From assembly GCF_000315625.1 (NCBI RefSeq), contig NW_005434592.1, positions 355,383 to 396,975 of the forward strand: 41,593 nucleotides of DNA. The letters are read 5' to 3'. This document shows positions 1,972 to 41,593 of the stretch, in pieces. The stretch's first letter is position 1. The number at the start of each line of letters is the position of its first letter. Position numbers and translations under genes: made by a program. Origin of the DNA: Guillardia theta CCMP2712. Taxonomy: Eukaryota; Protista; Cryptophyta. The notes beneath the pieces are model-generated. The model had not been told where the DNA came from and made no database searches. It worked only from the letters and a program-made list of their open reading frames with translations.

Positions 1972-2418
1972 NNNNNNNNNNNNNNNNNNNNNNNNNNNNN
2001 NNNNNNNNNNNNNNNNNNNNNNNNNNNNNNNNNNNNNNNNNNNNNNNNNNNNNNNNNNNNNNNNNNNNNNNNNNNNNNNNNNNNNNNNNNNNNNNNNNNN
2101 NNNNNNNNNNNNNNNNNNNNNNNNNNNNNNNNNNNNNNNNNNNNNNNNNNNNNNNNNNNNNNNNNNNNNNNNNNNNNNNNNNNNNNNNNNNNNNNNNNNN
2201 NNNNNNNNNNNNNNNNNNNNNNNNNNNNNNNNNNNNNNNNNNNNNNNNNNNNNNNNNNNNNNNNNNNNNNNNNNNNNNNNNNNNNNNNNNNNNNNNNNNN
2301 NNNNNNNNNNNNNNNNNNNNNNNNGGGGAGAAGGGAGAGAGAGAGGTCAAGGTGAGGAGGGGAAGGAGAATGAAGAAGGCGGGAAAAGGAAGGAAAAGAC
2401 TATCAAGGTCAGTCTGAC

Positions 2419-10615: not shown

Positions 10616-13600
10616 CTAGTCAGCTGAGGCTGCCTTCCTGATACTATGATCCACCTGCTGCCTCCAACCGGCGAGGATCGCACGTGCGGAGCGAGTGGTC
10701 CAACCATGCTCCATCCTCCAAACCCTCCGCCGGATTCGACTACGCTGGGTTCGGAGCATGTGGCTCCTTCGCTGCCAGACACGAAGCAGGTCGAAGAATC
10801 GCGAGAGCAGTTTAGCGTCTCTCTGCCAAGCGTCATGATCTGCCGCAGCCAATGAGATCATACCCATGATAATCTTTTTTCCCCCTCACCACTCAACATT
10901 GCAAGGCGAACTCCATAAAGCCTCCGACAGCTCTGTTTGAAAAAACGCTTCTGTGGTGCAGACAACTCATTTGAAGTACAAAAAGATCGATCAAAACATT
11001 ACCACCATAGCCTTGCAGACGAATGAGAACGAACGGCTTGAAAACCGCCAGAAGAAAAAGGCAAATGACAGCGAGTGCCAAGAAAGGGGAAAGACATGAC
11101 AGAGCACCGAGAGAGAAACGACGCGAGAGGACATGAAGGAAAACGTCAACGACGCCCACTCACGTAGGAAACGAGAGACAATGTAAGACGAAAATGACCC
11201 TTGAACACACACGCTGATAAAAACCAAACATCAAAAACATTCCCGTCAGAAAAAAAAATCACCTTCGCAAAAAAAATCGATTGAAAAGAGTTCGCTTCCA
11301 GGTAACAAAACAATTTGAAACAACATGAGAACGTGCAGATGAATGTCCAACAACGAAAACTCCAATACCAAATCGAAAAAACGCTCGTCTCCCCGCGTGC
11401 TCTCGCCAGCCCTCCATCGCCTCCCTCGCCGTCTCCCGCCCCCGCCGCCCCGTCAGCCGCCCCACGACCGCCGCCTGTACCCGCCGTGCCCGCCGCCCTC
11501 CCGGCCCACGCCCGCAGCGCCTCCCCGACACTCCCCGCCTCCTCCCCGCGCCTCGCCCGGCCCGACAGGATCTCCCCGACTCGCCTCGCCCGCGCTCGTC
11601 TCCCCGCGTGCTCTCGCCAGCCCTCCATCGCCTCCCTCNNNNNNNNNNNNNNNNNNNNNNNNNNNNNNNNNNNNNNNNNNNNNNNNNNNNNNNNNNNNNN
11701 NNNNNNNNNNNNNNNNNNNNNNNNNNNNNNNNNNNNNNCCGCAGCGCCTCCCCGACACTCCCCGCCTCCTCCCCGCGCCTCGCCCGGCCCGACAGGATCT
11801 CCCCGACTCGCCTCGCCCGCGCTCGTCTCCCCGCGTGCTCTCGCCAGCCCTCCATCGCCTCCCTCGCCGTCTCCCGCCCCCGCCGCCCCGTCAGCCGCCC
11901 CACGACCNNNNNNNNNNNNNNNNNNNNNNNNNNNNNNNNNNNNNNNNNNNNNNNNNNNNNNNNNNNNNNNNNNNNNNNNNNNNNNNNNNNNNNNNNNNNN
12001 NNNNNNNNNNNNNNNNNNNNNNNNNNNNNNNNNNNNNNNNNNNNNNNNNNNNNNNNNNNNNNNNNNNNNNNNNNNNNNNNNNNNNNNNNNNNNNNNNNNN
12101 NNNNNNNNNNNNNNNNNNNNNNNNNNNNNNNNNCGTGCCCGCGCCCTCCCCGCGTGCTCTCGCCAGCCCTCCATCGCCTCCCTCGCCGTCTCCCGCCCCC
12201 GCCGCCCCGTCAGCCGCCCCACGACCGCCGCCTGTACCCGCCGTGCCCGCGCCCTCCCGGCCCACGCCCGCAGCGCCTCCCCGACACTCCCCGCCTCCTC
12301 CCCGCGCCTCGCCCGGCCCGACAGGATCTCCCCGACTCGCCTCGCCCGCGCTCGTCTCTCCACGTACGTTTTCCATTTCCGTACGTGTTTGTCTTTTGAA
12401 TATGAATCGGACATCGTTTTCAATCTGAATGTTGTCTGCTCTTGCCACTTTTGTTTCAGGTGTTTCTCGTTTATGGCTTCTTTCCACGTTCGTACTCCCT
12501 TTCGAATTGTTGTAGCCTTTTTCGTCTTTTCATGTTTCATTATCTTCTCTTGGAGATACTTTTTGAATTGTGTTTCGTCTATCCATTTTTTCATACATTT
12601 TGATCTCAGGTTTGTTTGTGTATTGATCATTATTGTTTGGCAATTTCCGATTCGAAGGATATTCTTTTCTATGTCTCTGTTGCAATTTTTCCACTGGTTC
12701 AATGCCAAGGTTTTGCATCGCTCTTGCACCTTTGTTAGCCAATGGTTCATTATCAATCTTTCATAGCTGAGCACTTTGAGAAACTCGCACCATGAATTCA
12801 TTGATTTCTTAAGCATTGTTTTCTGTTTCAAACTGAAATGTTTGACCAACACAGAGAAAATTTCCAATTTTAGCTCGATGGGGCATGGGTGGCGTGGGTT
12901 CCCATCTTTGAGAGTTTTGAAACTGACACTTAAGGTTGCCGTACTTCTCCTGAACACAAGGGAATCTCTCAATTCCTTTCCTGCCTTTGAGAATTCGAAC
13001 CATTGTTGCATGGATTCTCTAATCAACTTCCGTGATGCAAGATGGATTTTTGACTCAACACCGCGCTTAACCACTACAATTTGTTCAGAATATTCTTGCC
13101 AACATCGAAAGATAGATAACTTCAACGATTTCCGTCTGTGTCCCTCGTAAAAATGTCCAAATTGGCAGATTTCAGCACCTGGCGCCTGGACTTGAACGGA
13201 CCAGTCAGATATGCACTGCTTGATCTTGTTGTTTGACTGAAGCCTTGCCATCATGTTCTCCAACACCTGATACCTCTTCTGCTTCCTTCTCAGCACAAGC
13301 GTAGTTGCAATCCATGCATCAAAGTAGGTAATCATCATGTCTTTCTCTGACTTTTTTCCAATGTGTGCGATAGCTGCTGACGCCGTCCTCTTGTTTGAAG
13401 TGATCATCTGCCAGGTATCCGTAGAGTTCCTCAACACTTCAAAACGAGTTCTAACCAACATTTTAGAGCAAAACCGCTCTATCACTTTTTTTCTTTGTTT
13501 GCGATCTAGATATGCCAGTCGAAGAGTTTCAAAAGTCCTCCATTTCTGCTTCAATTTTCGTTTTGTCTGTAGGGAGTGCATGCTTTTTCGAAGGATGATT

Positions 13601-21977: not shown

Positions 21978-22600
21978 TCTAACTAAACAAGCCAGCTAAG
22001 CTAGGCTTGTTTTCAAGGCTTTTCTTCTGTGCGCCCTGTTTCTGATCGCATAACATTTTCATGGGCAACAATCCCAATCGATGCGTTCTTCACCTTATAA
22101 AACGCGAGCTAATGCAATAAAATCCCCTTTCTAACAAGCCAGCTAGGCTTGTTTTCTTTTCTTCTGTGCGCCCTGTTTCTGATCGCATAACACTTTCATG
22201 GGCAACAATCCCAATCGATGCGTTCTTCACCTTATAAAACGCGAGCTAATGCAATAAAATCCCCTTTCTAACAAGCCAGCTAGGCTTGTTTTCTTTTCTT
22301 CTGTGCGCCCTGTTTCTGATCGCATAACACTTTCATGGGCAACAATCCCAATCGATGCGTTCTTCACCTTATAAAACGCGAGCTAATGCAATAAAATCCC
22401 CTTTCTAACAATCCAGCTAGGTGCAATAAAATCCCCTTTCTAACTAACAAGCCAGCTAGGCTTGTTTTTTTCTTCTGTGCGCCCTGTTTCTGATCGCATA
22501 ACATTTTCATGGGCAACAATCCCAATCGATGCGTTCTTCACCTTATAAAACGCGAGCTAATGCGAAATCCCCTTTCTTGTAACAAGCCAGCTAGGCTTGT
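21978..22600. repeat. 137-bp tandem repeat, ~4.5 copies
   Basis: ATGGGCAACAATCCCAATCG occurs at 22061, 22198, 22335 and 22509. The last interval carries 37 extra bp from a local duplication. Confidence 0.95.
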
Positions 22601-31852: not shown

Positions 31853-31993
31853 ATGAAAGTCAATCACGCTGCACTTGTCGTCGCTTCGATAGCAGTTTTG
31901 CAGTTTCAGTTAGTAGAAACAATCTGCACGCAACAGCCATGCACCAAGAACAGCGATTGCTCAAAGATCTGGTCAGCCAACGACCCCTACCCG
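31853..31993 (+). pseudogene. 5' stub of a secreted Cys-rich protein gene, cut off by telomeric repeats
   Basis: MKVNHAALVVASIAVLQFQLVETICTQQPCTKNSDCSKIWSANDPYP reads directly into (TTTAGGG)n. Confidence 0.5.
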
Positions 31994-32073
31994 AGGGTTT
32001 AGGGTTTAGGGTTTAGGGTTTAGGGTTTAGGGTTTAGGGTTTAGGGTTTAGGGTTTAGGGTTTAGGGTTTAGG
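31994..32073 (+). repeat. Telomeric repeat block 1 (TTTAGGG)n
   Basis: Perfect heptamer array. Confidence 0.98.
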
Positions 32074-32188
32074 AGCGCCGGTTATTTCAGGCGAGCGCCG
32101 GTTATTTCAGGCAGCGCCGGTTATTTCAGGCAGCGCCGGTTGTTTCAGGCAGCGCCGGTTATTTCAGGCAGCGCCGGTTATTTCAGGC
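32074..32188 (+). repeat. Six copies of the 19-mer AGCGCCGGTTATTTCAGGC at the element 5' end
   Basis: Direct observation. Confidence 0.95.
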
Positions 32189-32913
32189 ACCATGGCTGCA
32201 CGCGTGGTGTAGGGGAAGCTGCCAGGGCGCCAAGGAAGCTGCAAGCGAGAGGTTTGTATACTTCAAATAGCTTTCTAAGTATGGTTCTTCAGTATGATGA
32301 AAATGTTCGCAACCTGCTGTATCGGAGATCATGCCAATACACGCAGAGCGGACTTGTGGATGCCTCTGTCCTCGAAGCTGATCTCGTCGAGAGGGTGAAG
32401 AGCTTCGCGAAGCGTTATCCGAACAGCAGGACAGCCCAGGCTTGCAAGGCTGTGGAGGGATGCACCCCCGACGCTATCGCAGAAGCCATCCGCTCGACAT
32501 GTCAGCAGGCACGACGTGAGCTTCTCCAAGAAGCGATGACTGGATGGAGTGACGCATCCAGAGAATGGTTTATGCAGCAGATTGAAGAAGCCAAGAAGGA
32601 GAAGGTCGAGACATACACCGCCTCAGCAGGCAACGAGGTGACTTCCTTCATCTCCATGACTCTCCTGGGCATCTCCTCGGTGTATGTCAACCATGAAGAA
32701 AAGCTGAAGAAGAAATTCGAAGAGATCGGACTGATCGTAGACTCAGTGCAAGAGAGTAAAGCAATCATGTGGAAGGCTCCGTATAGACCCGAGATAGCGA
32801 GTGCTGAGGAGATCCCGGTGACTGTTTCCTTCCTCCGCATTGCACAAGCGGAGAAGCTCTGGCAGGGAAGAGAGGACTTCGCGATCGATGGTCGCAAGTT
32901 CACAGCTGTACAT
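32074..32913 (+). mobile_element. Family B retroelement, 5' portion (5' 19-mer array plus ORF1 N-half), 3'-truncated
   Basis: ORF 32140-32919 is homologous to the N-part of ORF1 at 34658 (RYPNSRT/QYPQSRT, AIAEAIRSTC/ALAEAIRQTC, EEIPV/DEIPV, LWQGREDFAIDGR/LWKGQTNFRIDGK). Confidence 0.85.
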
Positions 32914-33049
32914 GTTTAGGGTTTAGGGTTTAGGGTTTAGGGTTTAGGGTTTAGGGTTTAGGGTTTAGGGTTTAGGGTTTAGGGTTTAGGGTTTAGGGTT
33001 TAGGGTTTAGGGTTTAGGGTTTAGGGTTTAGGGTTTAGGGTTTAGGGTT
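32914..33049 (+). repeat. Telomeric repeat block 2
   Basis: Perfect (TTTAGGG)n. Confidence 0.98.
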
Positions 33050-34049
33050 CACAATGGAGGCAGCATCTCCGTCAAGCCAAGAGGACATGCAGCTCGTCAG
33101 CGAGCTGTCAGCAGTCATCGAAGATGCAGCTTCTTTGAACGAGGCGGGAACGAGCGAGCCGATCAAGCTGGTCCTGGACAAGGCCGTTGGCAACCTCCAC
33201 GACACCTTCTACTCTCCGGGGAGCCTGGAGTTCATGTCGCTGGGAGAGTGGGCGAAGATGCCAGAGGAGCAGGGAGTTGGGCGCAACGTTCTCAAGGAGA
33301 AGCTGGGGAAGTGGCTGCAGAGCAAGCGCTGGACTCGCGTGCAAGGAGAGAGCAAGAAGGCAAGGAGGGGCAGCGCGTTCTCGCCACGGGCAACGGCAGC
33401 TGCTGAGCTTGAGCAGGAGGCGGAGAGCGACGACATAGAGCGTCGATCTCTTAGCTTCCTGTTCATAGCACTGAGTAAATTCGCAGAGATGCATGTGGCC
33501 TGCTCGCTGAAGGTGGACAAGAAGGACCGACTGCGAGTGGAGATGAGGGAAGATGACGAAGAAGAGGAAGACATGGAGGAAGAGCAAGGCGAGGGCTAGC
33601 CTGGAAACAGGGCGAGCCCGTACCGAGCTTGAGCTGAGCTCAAGGTAAGGAGAGAAGGTAGGAGGCGACCGAAAGCCAAGGTGAGGAGAGGCAACTCTCC
33701 TGACTGAGGCTGAGGAAGCTGAATGGAGGAGGAGTAGGTGGCGACCGAAGGCCAAGGTGAGGAGAGGCAACTCTCCTGACTGAGGCTGAGGAAGCTGAAT
33801 GGAGGTAGAGTAGGTGGCGACCGAAGGCCAAGGTGAGGAGAGGCAACTCTCCTGACTGAGGCTGAGGAAGCCAAGAGAAGACAGCAGAAGTAGAAAGTAG
33901 AAAGACGCCTCAGAAGCAGGGTTCGCATTGTAGGCCGTGTACTCCCAGTGCTCGAGCGCCTCTTTAGACTAGGATCAAATTGCATAAGCCCACAACGAGG
34001 CCGAGCAACATTCTAGCATTCTAATAAACTCACATAATAATAATAATAA
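33050..34049 (+). mobile_element. Family B retroelement, 5'-truncated: ORF1 C-terminus, 3' UTR and (TAA)5 tail; no ORF2
   Basis: ORF 33054-33599 is homologous to the C-terminus of ORF1-A (KLVLDKAVGNLHDTFYSPG/KLRLDGAIVGLYDSLSSPG, LGEWA/LKEWA, FLFIALSK/LLFLALNK, acidic tail). It is followed by ~435 bp of UTR, AATAAA and (TAA)5 joined to TAGGG. Confidence 0.88.
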
Positions 34050-34173
34050 TAGGGTTTAGGGTTTAGGGTTTAGGGTTTAGGGTTTAGGGTTTAGGGTTTA
34101 GGGTTTAGGGTTTAGGGTTTAGTTTTAGCGTTTAAGGGTCTAGGGTTTAGGGTTTAGGGTTTAAGGTTTAGGG
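34050..34173 (+). repeat. Telomeric repeat block 3 (degenerate near the gap)
   Basis: (TTTAGGG)n with variant units next to the N run. Confidence 0.95.
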
Positions 34174-34273
34174 NNNNNNNNNNNNNNNNNNNNNNNNNNN
34201 NNNNNNNNNNNNNNNNNNNNNNNNNNNNNNNNNNNNNNNNNNNNNNNNNNNNNNNNNNNNNNNNNNNNNNNNN

Positions 34274-34496
34274 GTGAGGAGAGGCAACTCTCCTGACTGA
34301 GGCTGAGGAAGCCAAGAGAAGACAGCAGAAGTAGAGAGTAGAAAGACGCCTCAGAAGCAGGGTTCGCATTGTAGGCCGTGTACTCCCAGTGCTCGAGCGC
34401 CTCTTTAGACTAGGATCAAATTGCATAAGCCCACAACGAGGCCGAGCAACATTCTAGCATTCTAATAAACTCACATAATAATAATAATAATAATAA
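34274..34496 (+). mobile_element. Second family B 3' end with a (TAA)7 tail
   Basis: Nearly identical to 33833-34049 (one visible substitution), but with a different tail length. Confidence 0.9.
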
Positions 34497-34549
34497 TAGG
34501 GTTTAGGGTTTAGGGTTTAGGGTTTAGGGTTTAGGGTTTAGGGTTTAGG
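34497..34549 (+). repeat. Telomeric repeat block 4
   Basis: Perfect (TTTAGGG)n. Confidence 0.98.
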
Positions 34550-34657
34550 AGGCCGCTGGAGTAACAGACATGCTCTCCTCCCCTGCAGTTTGAGGGGATC
34601 CCTGCGAGCTAGGGTGCTGAACAGGACATTTTTCTGTGCAGAAACGGTTGTTTGATC

Positions 34658-36763
34658 ATGTGGTATCTATCCAAAGAGGAAAGGAAACAGATTGCTCGTG
34701 TCCGAGTTTCCCAGTTCCTAAACAAGGACACGACACCTTCAGCACCTTCGCTAGGAGAGCTGATCCGAAGATTGGAACACTTCGTCAGGCAGTACCCTCA
34801 GAGCAGGACAGGCAGAGCCTTGCAGTCCAAGGAAGTCTCGATGAACGCCTTAGCCGAAGCCATTCGACAGACCTGCAAACATGCTGAAGTCAGGAGCCAG
34901 GAGGATGCCATCAAAGAATGGGGGGAAGAAGGACAGTCGTGGTATGTCTCTGCATGGAACGCAGACAAACAGGAGGTACTAGACAAGAGTGCCTGCATCG
35001 ATGCTTCAGGAGCGTCCCCCGAGAGTGGTAAACTGATTACCATGGCTATCCTCGGAGTTCCTACCCAGTACATAAAACAAGTTGAGGTACTGTGTGAGAA
35101 GTTGAAGGATCAAGGACTCTTGGTGCACGAGGAGCAGGGCAAGAAATGCATCTCGTGGAGAGCCCCGATCAAGAAAGATTTGATTCCGACAGTGGATGAA
35201 ATCCCAGTCGTGGCAACACTCCAATTGAACGACGCAGCAGAACTGCTGTGGAAAGGACAGACGAACTTCAGGATCGACGGAAAGATGATCCGCGCGGTGA
35301 ACGCGCATTCGAAGCATCCTTGCTCCTTCAAGATAAGGCCACAGAAGGATAAGCACTCTGGCAAGGCGGGGGCCCTAGCTGAGTTCTCTCACCTCCTCAA
35401 GATGAATGGCATGAACTCAGCTGGGATTACGGAGATCTATCGTCAACACCTGCTGCAACAAGGAATAGCTGTGTTGGAGGTGCAGCCGGAAGCGGGCATG
35501 CAGCTAGAGGTCAAGACGAAGAGGAGACCTCAAGGTCAGCCCAACAAACGCACTTTCGCAGCAGCCGGAGTGGACGAGATACGACAAGGAAGAGAGATCG
35601 ATTGGATTGCGAGATGCTCTTCGACGGACGTCCTGAGCACCACGCTACGGATGTTTGAGGGAGATGACAGGAATGGAGGAAGCATACACCTCGGACTGAT
35701 GTCGGAAGATGAAAAGATCCTCAAATGGTTCACTACTCAGGTTAGTGCAATCACCAGGGTAACGAGACAGCATCCAATTAGGTTGGACTTCTTGCCCGAC
35801 GCGCTAGGAGCAGTACCACGAAGAGTGACCTATGAGGTGCTGGTCAAGAGTAAAGCACAGAAGGGAAGGTTCACAAGAGAGGAAGCTGAACAGATCTGCG
35901 ACGGGGAGGATCTCTCTATGGGCATGACAATTCGAGGACTGAGACGGATCGTGGCGAGCTGGAAGGAGTCAGCGGCTGAGCACATCGTCAAGATCTCCTC
36001 GAAGGAAGATGTCGAGACCAACAGCTGGAACGGTGAACATCTAGTGCTCAGCTTCTCAGAAAAAGAAACGGCGATCGACATACTCAGGTCCTTTGCGCCA
36101 TGGGACAGGGCGGGGAAACTTCTTCTCCTAGAGCCAGGCAGTGCCAACCTTTGGGAAGCGATCGCTACAGAACCCCCCACGGAGCCTCTGTGGGCACAGG
36201 TAGATCTCGAACGGATCGAGAATGAGATCAACATCCCAGAACCAGAGGCAAACGTGGTCCTCGAAGACATCTACAAAGTTCTGGAGGAGACTGTCAACCA
36301 GGGACAGAGTGCAGAAAACCAAGCTTGCAAACTCAGGCTCGATGGAGCCATCGTCGGCCTGTACGACAGCTTGTCATCTCCTGGAAATGCATGTTTTCCG
36401 ACGCTGAAGGAATGGGCGGAATCATCCTCGGCAACCCAGGACGACGACATGCAAGTTTTGAAGAGTAAGATTGCAAGAGTAAGCGAGCAGCATGCGTGGG
36501 AGACGGTAGCATCAAGAAGACGCCAGGGAGCCTTTGCAAAAGCAACAGGGAGAGGAGGGGAGAAACAACAAAAAGAATTTCGAACTGACCTGTTGTTTCT
36601 TGCCCTGAATAAATTAGTTCTCACAGCTACGCTAACCTACCAAGGCAGCGTTGGCTCGGGAGACGAAATTGAGTTTCTCTTGAGCAAGGCAGAGGAGGAG
36701 ATGGGACTGGAGATGGAAGAGGAGAGTGGCAACCAAGAGGGAGAGGTTGCCTCTCAACTCTAA
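34658..36763 (+). CDS. Retrotransposon ORF1 protein (~700 aa, no recognised domain)
   Basis: Long intronless ORF ending 9 bp before the ORF2 ATG; homologous to the family B ORFs. Confidence 0.85.
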   Translation: MWYLSKEERKQIARVRVSQFLNKDTTPSAPSLGELIRRLEHFVRQYPQSRTGRALQSKEVSMNALAEAIRQTCKHAEVRSQEDAIKEWGEEGQSWYVSAWNADKQEVLDKSACIDASGASPESGKLITMAILGVPTQYIKQVEVLCEKLKDQGLLVHEEQGKKCISWRAPIKKDLIPTVDEIPVVATLQLNDAAELLWKGQTNFRIDGKMIRAVNAHSKHPCSFKIRPQKDKHSGKAGALAEFSHLLKMNGMNSAGITEIYRQHLLQQGIAVLEVQPEAGMQLEVKTKRRPQGQPNKRTFAAAGVDEIRQGREIDWIARCSSTDVLSTTLRMFEGDDRNGGSIHLGLMSEDEKILKWFTTQVSAITRVTRQHPIRLDFLPDALGAVPRRVTYEVLVKSKAQKGRFTREEAEQICDGEDLSMGMTIRGLRRIVASWKESAAEHIVKISSKEDVETNSWNGEHLVLSFSEKETAIDILRSFAPWDRAGKLLLLEPGSANLWEAIATEPPTEPLWAQVDLERIENEINIPEPEANVVLEDIYKVLEETVNQGQSAENQACKLRLDGAIVGLYDSLSSPGNACFPTLKEWAESSSATQDDDMQVLKSKIARVSEQHAWETVASRRRQGAFAKATGRGGEKQQKEFRTDLLFLALNKLVLTATLTYQGSVGSGDEIEFLLSKAEEEMGLEMEEESGNQEGEVASQL

Positions 36764-36772
36764 AACCGAATC

Positions 36773-37726
36773 ATGACAGGAGGAGGAAGGGAGGAGGAAG
36801 GGGGGAGTGCCGGGAGTAGGCAAGGGGGGGAGATGGAAACGGTTTCAAAGGAAACGCAACATGTAGATAGAACACTGTATTTTTTTGATTGGATCGAGGA
36901 GATCCCATGGTCAGACAAACGAGGCGACAAGGAATTTGGCATCACTGCCCTGAACAATCGAGGAGTAAGCGGATTTTTATGCGAGAACATGATCGAAGTT
37001 ACTCTCAATGAGATGAGCAAGGCTCTTCAAGGAGGACGAGCAATACATATGGTACGCAAAGGGAGAGCTCGTGAGGACCAGCAAACGCGGAACATCATCT
37101 TCTTGCCAAGGGTAATATCCAGTCTGCGAGACGAGGCGTCCCGCTTGAGAGTCGGGAACAGATTTCACCTCAGCAGTTTGAGAGATGAGCAACACACCTT
37201 CCTGTTCCCAACTATCATCCACAGCAACCACTGGATTCTAATTGCATTAAGATATGATCGGCGATGCGCGTACATCTTGGACCCCCTCTGCGAGGACAGA
37301 ACGAGCACAACGAGGGACCCACGAGGGATCGAGGGAGCGAGGAATCTTGTAACAACGGGGGAGCACGCAAAAGGAGCAAGAGAAATGGCTGAGCTGACAA
37401 TCGGAGTGATCGAACACATCTTTGACGATCAGACCAATGCCCCATGGCAGATACAGTGGTGCTCAGCCTTCCAACAGGAAGATAACTTCAACTGCGGAGT
37501 GTTCGCTATCCTTCACACCCTACTGCTCTGCGAGACAAATCAAGACTGGCTAGCAACGATGGAAACGAGGACAAGACTAAGACTTCCGCAAGAATGGCTG
37601 ATGCAAACCAGAACACAACTGATTGCAGCTCTCACCCATCTAGAGAAGATGGAGGAAACGGCCCAGGTAATTCTGCGATCTCTGCCGAAGGAGGCGAGGG
37701 TGCAAGAGAGGAAACGGCCCAGGTAA
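36773..37726 (+). CDS. ORF2 part 1: Ulp1/C48-like cysteine protease domain
   Basis: FLFPTIIHSNHWILIAL...YILDPL...FQQEDNFNCGVFAI gives the His-Asp-Gln-Cys catalytic order of clan CE (SUMO protease) peptidases. Confidence 0.85.
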   Translation: MTGGGREEEGGSAGSRQGGEMETVSKETQHVDRTLYFFDWIEEIPWSDKRGDKEFGITALNNRGVSGFLCENMIEVTLNEMSKALQGGRAIHMVRKGRAREDQQTRNIIFLPRVISSLRDEASRLRVGNRFHLSSLRDEQHTFLFPTIIHSNHWILIALRYDRRCAYILDPLCEDRTSTTRDPRGIEGARNLVTTGEHAKGAREMAELTIGVIEHIFDDQTNAPWQIQWCSAFQQEDNFNCGVFAILHTLLLCETNQDWLATMETRTRLRLPQEWLMQTRTQLIAALTHLEKMEETAQVILRSLPKEARVQERKRPR

Positions 37727-38099
37727 TTCTGCGATCTCTGCCGAAGAAGGCGAGGGTGCAAGAGAGCTTGAAATCGACGACAAAGCCGGAGGAGGAGGTA
37801 CAGCCAAACGCAATCCAGCGGCTGATGACCTCGACGACAAAGCTTGAGGAGGAGGTACAGCCAAACGCAATCCAGCGGCCGATGACCTCGACGGCAAAGC
37901 CTGAGGAGAAGGTACAGCCGATCGCAATCCAGCGGCAGGCGACCACCACGAAGCCCCAACCAAGACTTTTTGGTGAGGAAATGGAGGAGAATGCACACTC
38001 AGGAGAGAAAACCTCCCAGAGAGGGAAGGAGCGGAGGGGGAAAAGGCAGGAGGAGCAAAGGGGCAATGATTGGGCGCAGATGCATCGAAAAAGCTCAGA

Positions 38100-38885
38100 C
38101 CCAGGTTTCCTCATCTCACAAAATGTGAATGGTTGCAATCACTTTGTTCTCAAGCACATCCTCGCATACTTAATCCAGTCCTTCCAACCTGGGGTTGTGC
38201 TACTACAAGAGGTAAGGGTCTCGGCCCGCGACGAGAACAAATTAAGGAAGATGATCAAGGAGAACTGGGCCTGCTACAGAATCTTCCTGGGGCCTGCAAA
38301 GATCAATGCCAAGAAGGGGAAAGGAGACCTGAGGTTGGTAACGCTGGTCCACGCTTCCCTCTCGCCTTCCCCTTCCCATGCCGCTCAGGCGTGCAACAAA
38401 GAAAAGAAATATCGAAACCGAGTGTTTTCGATCAAAGTCGGAACAGGGAAAAATTCTTTCGTAGTCACGAACCTCCATCAGGTACCGGCGGAAAATGCTA
38501 CACCTCGCTCTGGGAACGAGAGAGACACACATCATAGCCGGAGACTTTAATGCAGCAAGAACCAACACAACAACACCAATGCGGAGAGGATATTCCCCCT
38601 CATCTATCACCGCAAAAGCAGATGAGAGATTCGAGAAATTCCTGGCAGACCTTTCCGCACACCGTACACTCTCATATGAACAGATCAGCGAGACTGGGAC
38701 AACATTTACCTTCTCAACATGGTACAAACAAGAATTGATAGAAGCCAAACTCGACGCAGTCCTCGCTATCCACCCCCCAACTAATGAGGACAACTTCCCC
38801 AACATCTCCCTTCAATCGTGGACGGTCGACGGCTGTGTGATAGGGGGAGCAGTTGATCACAGAGCCCTGGTGGTGCAAGTGCACA
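38100..38885 (+). CDS. ORF2 part 2: apurinic/apyrimidinic-like endonuclease (frameshifted near 38500)
   Basis: ISQNVNG, VVLLQEV, IIAGDFNA, TFTF, KLDAVL and VDHRAL motifs, split over two reading frames. Confidence 0.9.
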
Positions 38886-39986
38886 CCAAGTTCACATCCG
38901 AGGAGACGCAGCTAATCCCACGAGTGGAAGTGCATCAGATGAATTCACGACAGAAGAAGGGGGAAACCCCTAAAAGCAGATGGGTGCTGGATCGCGATAC
39001 GTGGGAGGAGGAGAAGATCGAATGGGCGCAACAACTAGATGCAAACATACGAGACATGCGAGCTAAGGCGCAAGAATGTAACATTTGTGAGATGCTCGCC
39101 AACTCTCTACCACTAAAGGAGGTGAAAATCAGAAAGGGAGGGAGGCGACACGCGAACAAAGAACAAATGGATTTGAAGAGATCGATCCGCAACTTGCGGA
39201 CTAAACTTAGGGAAGCATCACAGCAAAGACCAGCGACTGGAGTACCTACGGAAGCTACATTACAACGAGAATTGCGAACTAAGATCGAGAGGTTCAGAAC
39301 GATATGTGAAGAACAAAACAACGAAGTTTTCCAAGAGATCTGCCAACAGCAGCAAACACGGCTTGGCACGGTAGGCAGCCGTGAATCCCAGAATGCAATG
39401 GGACGCAAGAATGATTTCACTCCCAAAGAACCGATGATAAGTCAAGACATCAAGAAAAAACACCCTAACTCCCTTCGTTGCCACAAAGGCTTGGCTCTTA
39501 GACTGCTCGGCAAGATAGTCGACAATGCCGACGAGCTCATCAACCAACTCGAAGCAACCCTATCTAGCGAAGACACGAGGGGTGTTAGAGCATTTTGGAG
39601 TGCAAACCAGCAACTGATGATTGGGATCGAGCGAGAGGGGACAGATGACTGGCTCTTTCTATCACTGCTACCTGCAAACACAATCACGAAAGCAATTGTA
39701 GCACTAGAAGAATCTAAGCGCTGGTAATGNNNNNNNNNNNNNNNNNNNNNNNNNNNNNNNNNNNNNNNNNNNNNNNNNNNNNNNNNNNNNNNNNNNNNNN
39801 NNNNNNNNNNNNNNNNNNNNNNNNNNNNNNNNNNNNNNNNNNNNNNNNNNNNNNNNNNNNNNNNNNNNNNNNNNNNNNNNNNNNNNNNNNNNNNNNNNNN
39901 NNNNNNNNNNNNNNNNNNNNNNNNNNNNNNNNNNNNNNNNNNNNNNNNNNNNNNNNNNNNNNNNNNNNNNNNNNNNNNNNNNNNAC

Positions 39987-41593
39987 CACCTGAGGGGGGT
40001 GCAGCTTTCAAGGAGACAACAACAGGAAATCACCAGACCCCTGGCACCGGGAGAGATTGATGTCTGGCTCGCCTCGGCGCCGAGACGAAAGGCTGCAGGA
40101 CTTGACCTCATTTCGAACGAAGTGCTGCGGGCGCTGCCACCAGCATGCCGAGAGGAAGTTGGCAAGTTAGTCAATGCAGCCCTAGAAGGCAAAGCTGAGG
40201 TTCTCAACAAGACAGCGAGAGTACGCCTCCTGCCAAAAAATCAATTCTGTCACATTCTCGAAAACATGCGGCCTATATGCGTCATGTCAACGCTTACTCG
40301 GCTGGTTCAGGCAATCCTGGCGCATCGTCTGAGTAAGACAGTAGAAGCAAATAACGTCCTCACAAACTTCCAGGAGGGGTTCCGTCCAGGCAGAAGCACA
40401 AGTCGGCAGGCTCATCGACTGATCTCGATCGTAGAAGAAGCAGAAGAGGCCAAAACGTCCCTCATTCTCTTGTACCTGGACTTTGCGAACTTCTTTAACA
40501 ATGTGGCAATCGAGGTGGTCGAGCAGGCAATGAACAGCCTAGGCTTCCATCCTGAGGACATTAGAACTGTGATAGCCTGCAACAGTGGAGTCGAGCTGCA
40601 AATACAAACAAACGAGTTCAACACAGGGAAAATACCTCTAATGATCGGGCTGCCTCAAGGTGGAGCAAGTAGCCCACAACTGGCCAACTTGGTGCTATGC
40701 ATCCTCTCTAGGCAATTGGACAAGTGCAGCACAGGAACAACAAACAACCTGTCCTTCGCCGATGACATGGTACTCATCGCACACACGATGAAAGAAATGC
40801 GAGAATTGGTAGCAGTGGTGGATTCCTTCTGCAAATGGTCAGGACTGCAAATCAACAATAAGAAATCAGAGATAACCAGCTTCGACTATGCTCGCAAGGG
40901 AGAGGTTCCTGGTGCGAACAAAATAACGGTCATGGGGGAACCTGTCGAAGCCCTACCGGCTACTAAACCGTTCAAATATCTCGGCTATCGCATCTCTCTG
41001 TGGAAGGAAGAAAGACGAAGAATAAAGGGCTGCCCTTTCACTTGGGGAGAACGAGCATACGTCTTTGAAAAAACCAAAGAACTGATCAAAAACATCAGCT
41101 CGTCGAGTTATACTCCTGCGCAAAAATTCTACCTGGTGAAAGTTGGAATTCTCAACGTCTTTCGCTACTCCGCAGTCATGACTGGATGGACTTGGCGAGA
41201 TCTACAAGAATTAGATCAACTGTGGATCAGAGCTTTTAAACAAGCGTTAGGACTGAGCAAAAGTACAGGGAATGGTATATTCTACCTGCCAACAGAGAAT
41301 GGAGGGCTGCAGGTCCCTCATCCTGCCCCAATCCTAGGGCGAGCAGCGCTACGATACATCGAACGAGAAGTGAATAGTAAGCATGGTGGAGACATCCAAG
41401 ATAGACTGATATCTAAACTCAGAAACTGGTTTGCGGAATGGGGATGCCAAACAATCCTCGAGCTCCAAAGAGAAATGAATTTTCGAACTATGGAGCGTGA
41501 TGTGGTGCGGGGACCCGAAGCTTTAGCAGTCTGGCTGGCGGAAAAACTAAACACGAGGATCAGCTGGGCCCACATAGAAGCAGGTCACCTACC
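39987..41593 (+). CDS. ORF2 part 3: non-LTR reverse transcriptase, open to the window end
   Basis: Manual translation: KAAGLDLI, LLPK, MRPICV, FQEGFRPGRST, LYLDFANFF, GLPQGGASSP, FADD (40755-40766), GLQINNKKS, FKYLG, YLPTENGGL. Confidence 0.95.

Follow-up and report, generated by a model that had tools for sequence, protein, structure and literature searches.

Few lineages are known to harbour retrotransposons specific for telomeres. In Bombyx mori, the R1-clade elements SART1 and TRAS1 target one nucleotide of the telomerase-type repeat and take one orientation, form arrays interleaved with the repeats and coexist with a retained TERT gene; to our knowledge, no ORF1-only partner has been described for them. 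In Drosophila, the HeT-A, TART and TAHRE elements (Jockey clade) build head-to-tail terminal arrays in which the commonest member encodes Gag (ORF1) alone and lives beside RT-encoding partners, and as far as we know such a partnership at chromosome ends has so far been a Drosophila speciality. MoTeR1 and MoTeR2, related to the CRE clade and equipped with a restriction-like endonuclease only, combine an RT-encoding element with a shorter RT-less partner that has the same ends, and the mammalian HAL1 (half-L1) is a non-autonomous LINE derivative that encodes ORF1 alone and needs the ORF2 protein in trans. SART1 lies in G-strand orientation and its proteins recognize the 3′ UTR in trans (PMC7265360), the MoTeRs sit in the telomeres of Pyricularia (Magnaporthe) oryzae (PMC7367193, PMC10088271), and a 2023 survey lists Zepp (Chlorella), GilM/GilT (Giardia), Tx1-1_ACar (anole) and Athena (rotifers) as further telomere-associated retroelements outside insects (PMC10088271). 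The presence of an APE before and a restriction-like endonuclease after the RT in one protein has been stated to be unique to Dualen, whose protease is Josephin-related (PMC9977147), and an Ulp1/C48-like protease occurs in NeSL and Utopia (PMC4640811).

Here we analysed a window of 41,593 nucleotides (the whole stretch under study) from Guillardia theta CCMP2712, a cryptophyte alga and so the kind of host that the original prediction had guessed. Matches to named G. theta proteins support this origin. The terminus of its scaffold, C82, is a head-to-tail array of co-oriented retrotransposons that lie in the same register within telomere repeats (Table 1). The double telomere unit gave 41 matches against 0 expected, and the four same-strand tracts, as assembled, alternate with co-oriented retroelement pieces just as had been anticipated. 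The junction between unique DNA and the first tract ends in GGG, as do most comparable junctions elsewhere.

Table 1. Features of the telomeric array, in window positions.
Feature	Position	Strand	Remarks
Telomere tract 1	31994-32073	+	11.4 units; adjoins unique scaffold DNA at 31993/31994, the array base
Family B 5′ part	32074-32913	+	3′-truncated copy, capped by telomere repeats
Six 19-bp 5′ repeats of family B	32074-32189	+	
Family B ORF1 N-terminus	from ATG at 32281	+	
Telomere tract 2	32914-33049	+	19.4 perfect units; stands in place of the B middle
Family B 3′ part	33050-34051	+	5′-truncated copy
Family B ORF1 C-terminus	33054-33599	+	181-aa ORF
Family B 76-bp repeat, 2.9 copies	33649-33871	+	
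Family B 3′ box	34012-34034	+	
Family B (TAA)n tail	34035-34051	+	
Telomere tract 3	34050-34173	+	degenerate towards gap
Assembly gap	34174-34273	.	5′ part of next B copy inside; stated length may not be true length
Second B 3′ end (last ~210 nt) and (TAA)n tail	34274-34498	+	99.5% identity to 33833-34049
Telomere tract 4	34497-34549	+	7.6 units
Family A, window copy	34550-41593	+	5′ end through RT, cut by scaffold end
Family A 5′ end	34550-36763	+	5′ repeat, 5′ UTR, ORF1
Single 20-bp 5′ repeat unit, family A	34550-34569	+	
Family A ORF1	34652/34658-36763	+	703 aa (701 aa from second start)
Family A ORF2, N-terminal half	36773-39729	+	protease, repeats, APE
Ulp1/C48-like protease, family A ORF2	~37205-37549	+	
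56/57-bp repeats, family A ORF2	37652-37936	+	
APE, family A ORF2	~38106-38885	+	
Assembly gap within family A ORF2	39730-39984	.	size matches intact copy
Family A ORF2 RT domain	39985-41593	+	RVT_1 ~40233-40994, FADD box

The first family B copy had been read as one element and proved to be two broken pieces, namely a 3′-truncated copy, its telomere cap and a 5′-truncated copy. A full B copy continues past the break point, and the replacement of the middle (~930 bp) by 136 bp of telomere repeat occurs in the window copy only: the two halves are 920-932 bp apart in nearly all copies, 888 and 896 bp apart in two, and 137 bp apart in the window. The degeneracy of tract 3 near the first gap probably reflects read-end errors, and after this gap the sequence restarts within the B 76-bp repeat. 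The flanks of the second gap stand 270 positions apart in the window (255 of them N) and 270 bp apart in the intact family A copy L061; since the flanks are collinear and the spacing equal, the element is continuous across this gap and the gap is about the right size. The window ends where the scaffold ends, so that its family A copy lacks ~3.3 kb, from the linker through the CCHC motif and predicted restriction-like endonuclease to the 3′ UTR and (CTA)n tail.

Family A is ~10.3 kb long, with an ORF1 of 701-703 aa, in which no recognisable domain was found, and an ORF2 of 2481 aa in the intact copy. Its expected status as an autonomous two-ORF LINE was borne out by independent ENA contigs, on which an intact copy carries the 20-bp 5′ repeats, an uninterrupted 2481-aa ORF2 with APE and RT recognized by Pfam, and a 3′ end that enters telomere repeats. 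The 701-aa ORF1 product of the window is identical to P0022 from independent ENA contigs. The window copy does contain both ORFs, as predicted, but its ORF2 differs from the intact copy by a 56-bp insertion at ~37692 and a 35-bp deletion at ~38496, and the frame is broken between them. It has a single 20-bp 5′ repeat, and other copies have up to about 29-30.

The ORF2 of family A encodes, in this order, an Ulp1-like protease, an APE, an RT and a CCHC motif with a predicted restriction-like endonuclease. The RT is a non-LTR one with a YxDD-like FADD box, and Pfam RVT_1 matches both the window copy (E 6.6e-36) and L061 (E 4e-35); its best PDB matches are the R2 and L1 ORF2 proteins, and nothing named exceeds 28% identity to it. 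Congruently with non-LTR membership, the elements have unrelated 5′ and 3′ ends, variable 5′ truncation and (TAA)n or (CTA)n tails of variable length. The APE (Pfam E 5.9e-8) shows the N, E, D/N and D-H motifs, and the Ulp1 domain, for which a relative of 33% identity exceeds the Pfam threshold, keeps its His/Asp/Gln/Cys residues. At the C-terminus, C-X2-C-X8-H-X4-C followed by PD...E is conserved between family A and a further family, C. A restriction-like endonuclease is thus predicted at the level of motifs; searches of this region gave no PDB or Pfam sequence match, and R2 proteins were the top fold matches (Foldseek E no better than 5e-3, on a model of pLDDT 50).

With this C-terminal CCHC/restriction-like domain and an N-terminal protease, the ORF2 is not APE-only, and we rejected a placement in the R1 clade proper. 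Both SART1 and TRAS1 differ from the Guillardia elements in this respect, having an APE without a restriction-like endonuclease or protease, and also in their poly(A) tail, their insect hosts and the presence of both ORFs in each family. The layout resembles that of Dualen/RandI of Chlamydomonas reinhardtii, which has an APE N-terminal and a restriction-like endonuclease C-terminal of the RT (the latter matched here at motif level) together with a cysteine protease. Dualen differs in its Josephin-related rather than Ulp1/C48-like protease, is not telomere-specific and is not known to have a separate ORF1 or an ORF1-only partner, and the RNase H domain expected of the Dualen group gave no match here in ORF2 aa 1507-2239. 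We would call family A Dualen-like by its domain layout.

Family B is 2.77 kb at full length and codes for ORF1 alone. Each of its halves is present in at least 40 genome copies of 97-99% identity. The ORF at window positions 32074-32913 aligns with aa 1-217 of family A ORF1 (29% identity, E 2e-28), and the 181-aa ORF at 33050-34049 aligns with aa 536-655 (27% identity, E 4e-9); the latter piece contains no ORF2. No RT was found in the B copies, in which ORF1 is always followed by ~450 nt of UTR and then the tail. A 715-aa ORF is intact in half of the 12 full copies (6), and two further copies have ORFs of 713 and 701 aa. The mean pairwise dN/dS of 0.21, obtained from pre-selected intact copies alone and from pairs that are not independent, points to an ORF1 under purifying selection. 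The B ORF1 is ~30% identical to that of family A and to that of family C, and it falls with a Hanusia phi sequence into a separate clade; this divergence and separate clade argue that B is not a recent deletion derivative. As foreseen, B is a family in its own right, strongly diverged, with ORF1 alone and a (TAA)n tail, and it is abundant. Two observations hint at expression of the elements: a 99%-identical peptide is present in a transcriptome-derived EukProt set, and 0.6-0.78 of the words of B were found in runs guessed to be RNA. HAL1 resembles B in encoding only ORF1 but is dispersed instead of telomeric, and a repeatedly formed and recent L1 derivative rather than an old separate lineage, and the MoTeR system differs in that the partner has no ORF1 homologue and the host is a fungus.

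The simple two-component pair that had been proposed did not hold, for at least four families (A, C, B and B2) occupy the same niche. Families A and C are the autonomous members; for C we saw the RT and the CCHC/restriction-like parts, and the full ORF2 was read for A alone. Comparison of the 3′ ends, which the original prediction had called for, revealed short 3′-terminal boxes common to A, B and C, followed by triplet tails, (CTA)n in A and (TAA)n in B. These boxes measure 17-33 nt (17/17 nt of the B box are common to A) and the remainder of the UTRs does not align. They include an AATAAA-like signal, which could be conserved for polyadenylation alone.

Every one of the 40 element 3′ ends that could be inspected enters telomere repeats in one register, and in 40/40 segments the element strand is the telomere G-strand, as in SART1. 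Targeting of telomere repeats, as predicted, is thereby upheld, and we did not see most copies lying outside them. At the 5′ side, 28/40 ends directly abut a telomere unit that finishes in TTTAG(G), and variable 5′ truncations, with points that differ among copies, start immediately past the repeats. Tails are 9 to 36 nt long, and the median telomere tract separating two elements is 44 bp (range 16 to 178 bp). Copies sit at scaffold ends with their tails outward, on the minus strand within ~25 kb of coordinate 1 and on the plus strand at proven scaffold ends. In at least nine other 3′-truncated elements, telomere repeats follow the break directly as a cap. The supposed coexistence with telomerase gained support from a TERT candidate in the genome (RNA-binding-domain match of 51 bits). 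These properties are those of a SART/TRAS-like system, and the array in the window is probably the innermost part of a chromosome end that a guild of non-LTR retrotransposons specific for telomere repeats has assembled.

We consider it unlikely that the array instead reflects subtelomeric repeats spread by recombination, break-induced replication or tandem duplication, with the retroelements as old passengers and B as a dead deletion derivative. Such processes would account for joints without tail or telomere tract, at which a B 3′ UTR runs straight into B 5′ repeats, for one 5′ end that is a B/A chimera, for the identical flanks of C228 and C60, and for tandem B neighbours (C225, C149, C183) that could be duplications. 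Indeed, these tail-less joints and the few copies that are mid-scaffold or inverted (C60:377 kb, C72, C8) indicate that recombination also shapes the arrays. However, tail and tract lengths, the number of 5′ repeats (1 to ~30) and the truncation points all vary, neighbour combinations differ, and the intact ORFs, low dN/dS and separate ORF1 clade of B do not fit a dead derivative.

A little less probable still is an assembly artefact, in which the alternation of tracts and elements would stem from Sanger reads with repeats that were wrongly joined where the scaffold ends. The region does contain two gaps, the telomere tract beside the first one is degenerate, the scaffold breaks off within a repeat and the B copy with a telomere repeat for its middle is unique. 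Nevertheless, junctions of these types are seen again in 40 independent segments spread over about 40 scaffolds, the 5′ repeats of A and its 3′ telomere junction are reproduced in an independent short-read assembly, and telomere-capped truncated elements are found at the other places mentioned above.

The predicted HeT-A/TART-like pair was right in that an ORF1-only element (B, interleaved with A and C) shares the chromosome end with RT-encoding elements, but the orientation is opposite to that of HeT-A/TART. A mechanism of the Drosophila type, in which elements attach by priming from the terminal 3′-OH without specific nicking and replace telomerase, would agree with terminal head-to-tail arrays, a Gag-only member and truncated elements at former ends, yet it is very improbable, as end priming leaves tails facing the centromere, and Drosophila has no telomerase repeats, whereas here all tails are distal, the sense strand continues the G-strand, all elements lie within telomerase-type repeats in a fixed register with telomere-flanked copies, the two ORF2 endonuclease domains (the restriction-like one predicted) keep their catalytic motifs and a TERT candidate is present.

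The distal tails and the G-strand sense imply endonuclease nicking inside the repeats, as in SART1, and we therefore favour endonuclease-dependent insertion into double-stranded repeats by a guild of telomere-specific elements over chromosome-end priming. In the cycle that we propose, an ORF2 endonuclease would cut the C-rich strand of the telomere duplex at one set point, placed by the junction within CCC/T/A/AA, and the freed 3′-OH would prime reverse transcription on the RNA 3′ end, whose ...UA triplets, (UAA)n or (CUA)n, could pair with TA of the nicked strand. From the common 17-33 nt 3′ boxes we infer that B RNA, coated with its own ORF1 protein, may take the ORF2 protein of A or C in trans. 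Telomerase would then re-extend the end. Erosion or breakage may strip the distal (3′) parts of terminal elements, new repeats would cap the remnants and fresh insertions would follow; the broken B of the window could be the record of one such round of erosion, capping and insertion.

More tentatively, and with somewhat less than even confidence, we propose that telomerase and a telomere-specific LINE guild of a new Dualen-like dual-endonuclease lineage jointly build the chromosome ends of Guillardia theta, perhaps to the benefit of the host, and that an old, separately evolving ORF1-only element provides a Gag-like protein of its own and borrows the ORF2 protein. If true, the division of labour would be convergent with that of HeT-A/TART, yet achieved via sequence-specific nicking inside telomerase repeats. 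The ORF1-clade relatives in Hanusia phi suggest that the arrangement may be older than the split of those genera. The claim that no description of such a system exists holds for the searchable literature, a scope beyond which Repbase and Dfam lie: there, we found none of an autonomous two-endonuclease element with an ORF1-only telomere partner. Zepp, GilM/GilT, Tx1-1_ACar and Athena differ in that none is from a cryptophyte, and neither dual endonucleases nor an ORF1-only partner has been reported for any of them.

The partnership of ORF1-only and RT-encoding elements is now found in a cryptophyte with telomerase-type repeats and a TERT candidate, and its autonomous members keep an APE, a predicted restriction-like endonuclease and an Ulp1-like protease. 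The system could reveal which of the two endonucleases determines the target, by what means reverse transcription on telomere DNA is initiated from short 3′ boxes and triplet tails, and whether the evolution of a Gag-only partner is possible without telomerase loss. Dozens of G. theta "hypothetical proteins" (GUITHDRAFT entries) are the ORF1 of these telomere elements, and because of the telomere-element arrays many scaffolds of the assembly stop in repeats.

In the last part of the window the original prediction had placed four telomeric blocks alternating with co-oriented retroelement pieces, and this is the arrangement that we found, with all four tracts on the + strand. Before it come 32 kb of ordinary nuclear DNA, in which we saw simple repeats and three additional gaps. 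The window covers 355383-396975 of scaffold C82. When we searched the assembly (87 Mb, 669 scaffolds), the downstream part of family A was absent from C82 past the window end, so the window end is the scaffold end.

Features of the window (positions count within the window)
Feature	Position	Strand	Content
Gap	1972-2324		in the unique part; unrelated to the finding
Gap	11639-11738		in the unique part; unrelated to the finding
Gap	11908-12133		in the unique part; unrelated to the finding
Tandem repeat	22019-22595		137/174-bp units, 99% identical; unrelated to the finding
Telomere tract 1	31994-32073	+	
B 5' piece	32074-32913		six 19-bp repeats at its start; ORF 29% identical to A-ORF1 aa 1-217
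Telomere tract 2	32914-33049	+	
B-type piece	33050-34049		181-aa ORF, 27% identical to the C-terminus of A-ORF1
Telomere tract 3	34050-34173	+	
Gap before the third B	34174-34273		degenerate telomere tract on one side, B 3' fragment starting inside the 76-bp repeat on the other
Telomere tract 4	34497-34549	+	
Family A piece	34550-41593		ORF1 of 703 aa and ORF2 pieces
A 5' repeat	34550-34569		1 unit
Tandem repeats in A ORF2	37652-37936		56- and 57-bp repeats, in the linker between protease and APE
Broken frame in A ORF2	~37692 to ~38496		
Gap in family A	39730-39984		255 N

Genome searches recovered each half of family B at least 40 times, at 97-99% identity. The spacing of the halves is 920-932 bp in nearly all other copies, with values of 888 and 896 bp in two of them, whereas the window copy alone has 137 bp, entirely telomere repeat; the ORF of its 5' piece passes straight into telomere repeats, and a full B copy continues in sequence past this break point. 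The difference in spacing argues that the window B is a 3'-truncated copy with a new telomere cap. We rejected both family A and a third family as the source of its 5' piece, which matches the 5' end of B. In the B-type piece that follows, the ORF is succeeded by a 76-bp repeat, the 3' UTR and a (TAA)n tail, without ORF2. The window thus holds a capped 3'-truncated B, an independent 5'-truncated B and, beyond the gap, the 3' end of a third B. The array is real, with its pieces in the order given by the assembled sequence. The diverged homologous ORF1, the (TAA)n tail and the lack of ORF2 ascribed to family B stood, but its copy in the window is a set of broken pieces and not one element.

A full B measures 2.77 kb. 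It starts with 19-bp repeats in variable number and an ORF1 of 715 aa; a UTR of ~450 nt that contains the 76-bp repeats comes next, and a conserved 3' box precedes the closing (TAA)n. The 715-aa ORF is intact in six of the 12 full copies, and two others have ORFs of 713 and 701 aa. Among the six intact copies, which were pre-selected as intact and whose pairs are not independent, the mean pairwise dN/dS was 0.21. A reverse transcriptase (RT) was found in none of the B copies. We also identified a B-like subfamily, B2, whose ORF1 has 57-61% identity to that of B and whose 19-bp repeat differs.

Family A was expected to carry both ORF1 and ORF2, and it does. An exact-protein look-up placed the A-ORF1 product on two 10.4-kb contigs from independent short-read data in ENA. 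Both start with 20-bp A-type repeats and continue with ORF1 and an uninterrupted ORF2 of 2481 aa; behind the 3' box, a (CTA)n tail leads into 100 nt of telomere repeat. Full-length copies of ~10.25 kb are present on scaffolds C231, C64, C160 and C15. The window copy is 97-98% identical to intact A, and its ORF2 frame is broken by the insertion of a 56-bp repeat unit and a 35-bp deletion. One extra 56-bp unit corresponds to the frame break, and the repeat count differs in the intact copy. The flanks of the gap within this copy are collinear with intact A, in which 270 bp stand opposite 270 window positions (255 of them N), so the gap is continuous and its size about right.

In the ORF2 pieces of the window, Pfam detected Peptidase_C48 (weak), Exo_endo_phos (weak, in this broken copy) and RVT_1 (E 6.6e-36). 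The Ulp1/C48-like domain has conserved His, Asp, Gln and Cys, and in a relative with 33% identity, from a Logan contig, it scores above the Pfam cut-off (E 9.9e-8). The APE domain (Pfam E 5.9e-8) shows the usual catalytic motifs and the RT of A carries a FADD box. The C-terminus, 59% identical between A and C, contains C-X2-C-X8-H-X4-C followed by PD...E. Pfam gave only a weak zf-RVT match over the CCHC motif, the ESM Atlas returned only zf-RVT-type clusters, the PD-(D/E)xK part had no match by PDB sequence search or Pfam, and a PDB profile search with the C-terminus retrieved nothing relevant. The best fold matches of its low-confidence model (pLDDT 50) were to R2 retrotransposon proteins and other PD-(D/E)xK nucleases (E 5e-3 to 7e-2). 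From the motifs and this weak fold match only, we regard the C-terminus as a putative restriction-like endonuclease. Family C, whose RT is 66-69% identical to that of A at the nucleotide level, has its own 5' repeat, a C-terminal CCHC/endonuclease region as in A and a (TAA)n tail. A 3552-bp Logan contig of SRR20069373 (L063) contains a further family. Its ORF1 shows 36% identity to A, the N-terminal part of its ORF2 bears a clear Ulp1 domain, and a 19-bp 5' repeat is specific to it; the family belongs either to G. theta or to a relative.

The architecture of the autonomous members is that of a Dualen-like dual-endonuclease element, with its restriction-like part putative. Dualen, an element with a Josephin-related protease, has been described as the only one to combine APE with a restriction-like endonuclease (PMC9977147), and NeSL and Utopia are known to have Ulp1-like proteases (PMC4640811). 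Family A would share the endonuclease pairing with Dualen but differs from it in its Ulp1/C48-like protease.

To examine targeting we tabulated flanks at 60 loci of the genome, merged into 40 segments (188 kb in total). The element strand was the telomere G-strand in 40 of 40 segments. All 40 visible B/C-type 3' ends carry tails of 9-36 nt and then run into telomere repeat, always in one register. At the 5' side, 28 of 40 ends lie directly on a unit ending TTTAG(G), the remainder on degenerate repeats or chimeric joints. Telomere tracts between elements have a median length of 44 bp (range 16-178 bp). About 90 scaffolds bear one of the families; of 15 B copies on the minus strand, 14 are found in the first 25 kb of their scaffold, and for plus-strand copies every known end places them at the scaffold end (C29, C225, C161, C157, C187, C4, C60, C111, C128 and C183). 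A few copies are mid-scaffold or back to back, with 5' ends facing (C72:429962-440980, minus, and C72:452929-456777, plus; C60:377257; C8:1176166-1178004; C176), and may reflect mis-joined scaffolds, fusions or former ends that have become internal. On C161, C149 and C134 (loci L017, L038 and L052) a B 3' UTR lacking its tail adjoins the 5' repeats of a following B with no telomere tract between them, which does not fit simple insertion.

Telomerase, which had been proposed to coexist with the elements, has a candidate gene: the single telomerase RNA-binding domain match of the genome (51 bits; C21:562211-562372, minus) points to TERT, and its one in-frame TAG is probably an intron boundary. 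Unique DNA passes into telomere repeat at the base of seven arrays, and telomere repeat caps a minimum of nine other 3'-truncated elements without intervening sequence. Most junctions of these two classes, among them those at window 31993/31994 and on C184, C60:377 kb, C110, C133, C125 and C111, have GG or GGG as their last bases, which is the trace that de novo telomerase addition to broken ends would leave.

Since the tails are distal and the G-strand runs on into the sense strand, first-strand cDNA would be primed from an inward-pointing C-strand 3'-OH, and hence from a nick and not from a chromosome terminus. GGG comes directly after the tails, which are (ATA)n or (CTA)n. If the nick falls within CCC/T/A/AA and the palindromic TA pairs with the terminal UA of the RNA, exactly the junctions observed would result, and the triplet tails could arise from repeated realignment. 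For the Drosophila I factor and its (TAA)n tail, a similar process is known. The geometry is the same as that of SART1, with G-strand sense and C-strand nick priming (PMC7265360), and opposite to that of HeT-A/TART; the original prediction likened the pair to HeT-A/TART, but the mechanism would be SART-like and not HeT-A-like. The two-component reading was largely right, with A carrying ORF2 and B only ORF1, but the guild is larger than a pair and includes C and B2.

When we compared 3' ends, the UTRs of A, B and C had two short blocks in common, an upstream CC..TTTAGAC box and a terminal TCTAATAAA box, the remainder being unalignable. The 3' box of B is identical to that of A at 17 of 17 nt, and B shares with family C a 33-nt block and the tail type. 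SART1 proteins mobilise RNAs bearing the SART1 3' UTR (PMC7265360). By analogy, we infer that B may be mobilised in trans through the shared boxes, with A or C as helper. The elements might also benefit their host.

Pfam found no domain in A or B ORF1 and the ESM Atlas returned nothing with ORF1. An exhaustive profile search yielded 57 related clusters among 1.84 billion representatives, none of which indicated a known family. The best fold matches of a poor model built from 12 sequences (pLDDT 50) were to multi-RRM proteins, all with E above 1e-3; this resemblance would fit an RNA-binding role and is a lead only. A midpoint-rooted tree split the ORF1 sequences in two. Those of A, C and the Logan relative, each of which goes with an ORF2, formed one group, and B, B2 and a Hanusia phi sequence the other, so B represents an old lineage and did not arise as a recent deletion of A. 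An origin of B as a recent internal-deletion derivative of A was rejected, given an identity of only ~30% and the separate clade. In Hanusia phi an ORF1 homologue shows 37% identity.

Proteins with 94-100% identity to the ORF1s of the elements are named hypothetical proteins of Guillardia theta CCMP2712; this cryptophyte alga is thus the host, in line with the alga-like protist proposed. A 99%-identical B ORF1 peptide occurs in a transcriptome-derived EukProt set labelled Heterocapsa arctica, probably through cross-contamination, and a fraction of 0.6-0.78 of the B 5' ORF words was present in runs guessed to be RNA, from at least six studies. Each of these is a hint, and no proof, of B expression. 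A 2023 survey of telomere-inserted retroelements covers SART/TRAS, GilM/GilT, Zepp1, MoTeR1, Tx1-1_ACar, Athena and the Drosophila trio, and cryptophytes are absent from it (PMC10088271). Our search, which covered the literature, found no relevant description of telomere retrotransposons in Guillardia or cryptophytes.

The extreme 5' end of each family, B2, C and the L063 family included, is a tandem repeat with a 19-20-bp unit peculiar to that family and a highly variable copy number: B has 1-14 units, and the A repeat, single in the window, reaches ~29 units in C15:1033193-1037186 (L002) and C17:21185-25178 (L010). These repeats may serve as a promoter, or may merely be left behind when the 5' end is completed. 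L010, on the minus strand, has a chimeric 5' end in which telomere repeat is followed by 1.3 units of the B 19-mer, a short TTAGG, ~30 units of the A 20-mer and the A body; it looks like the outcome of template switching at the 5' end, or of recombination.
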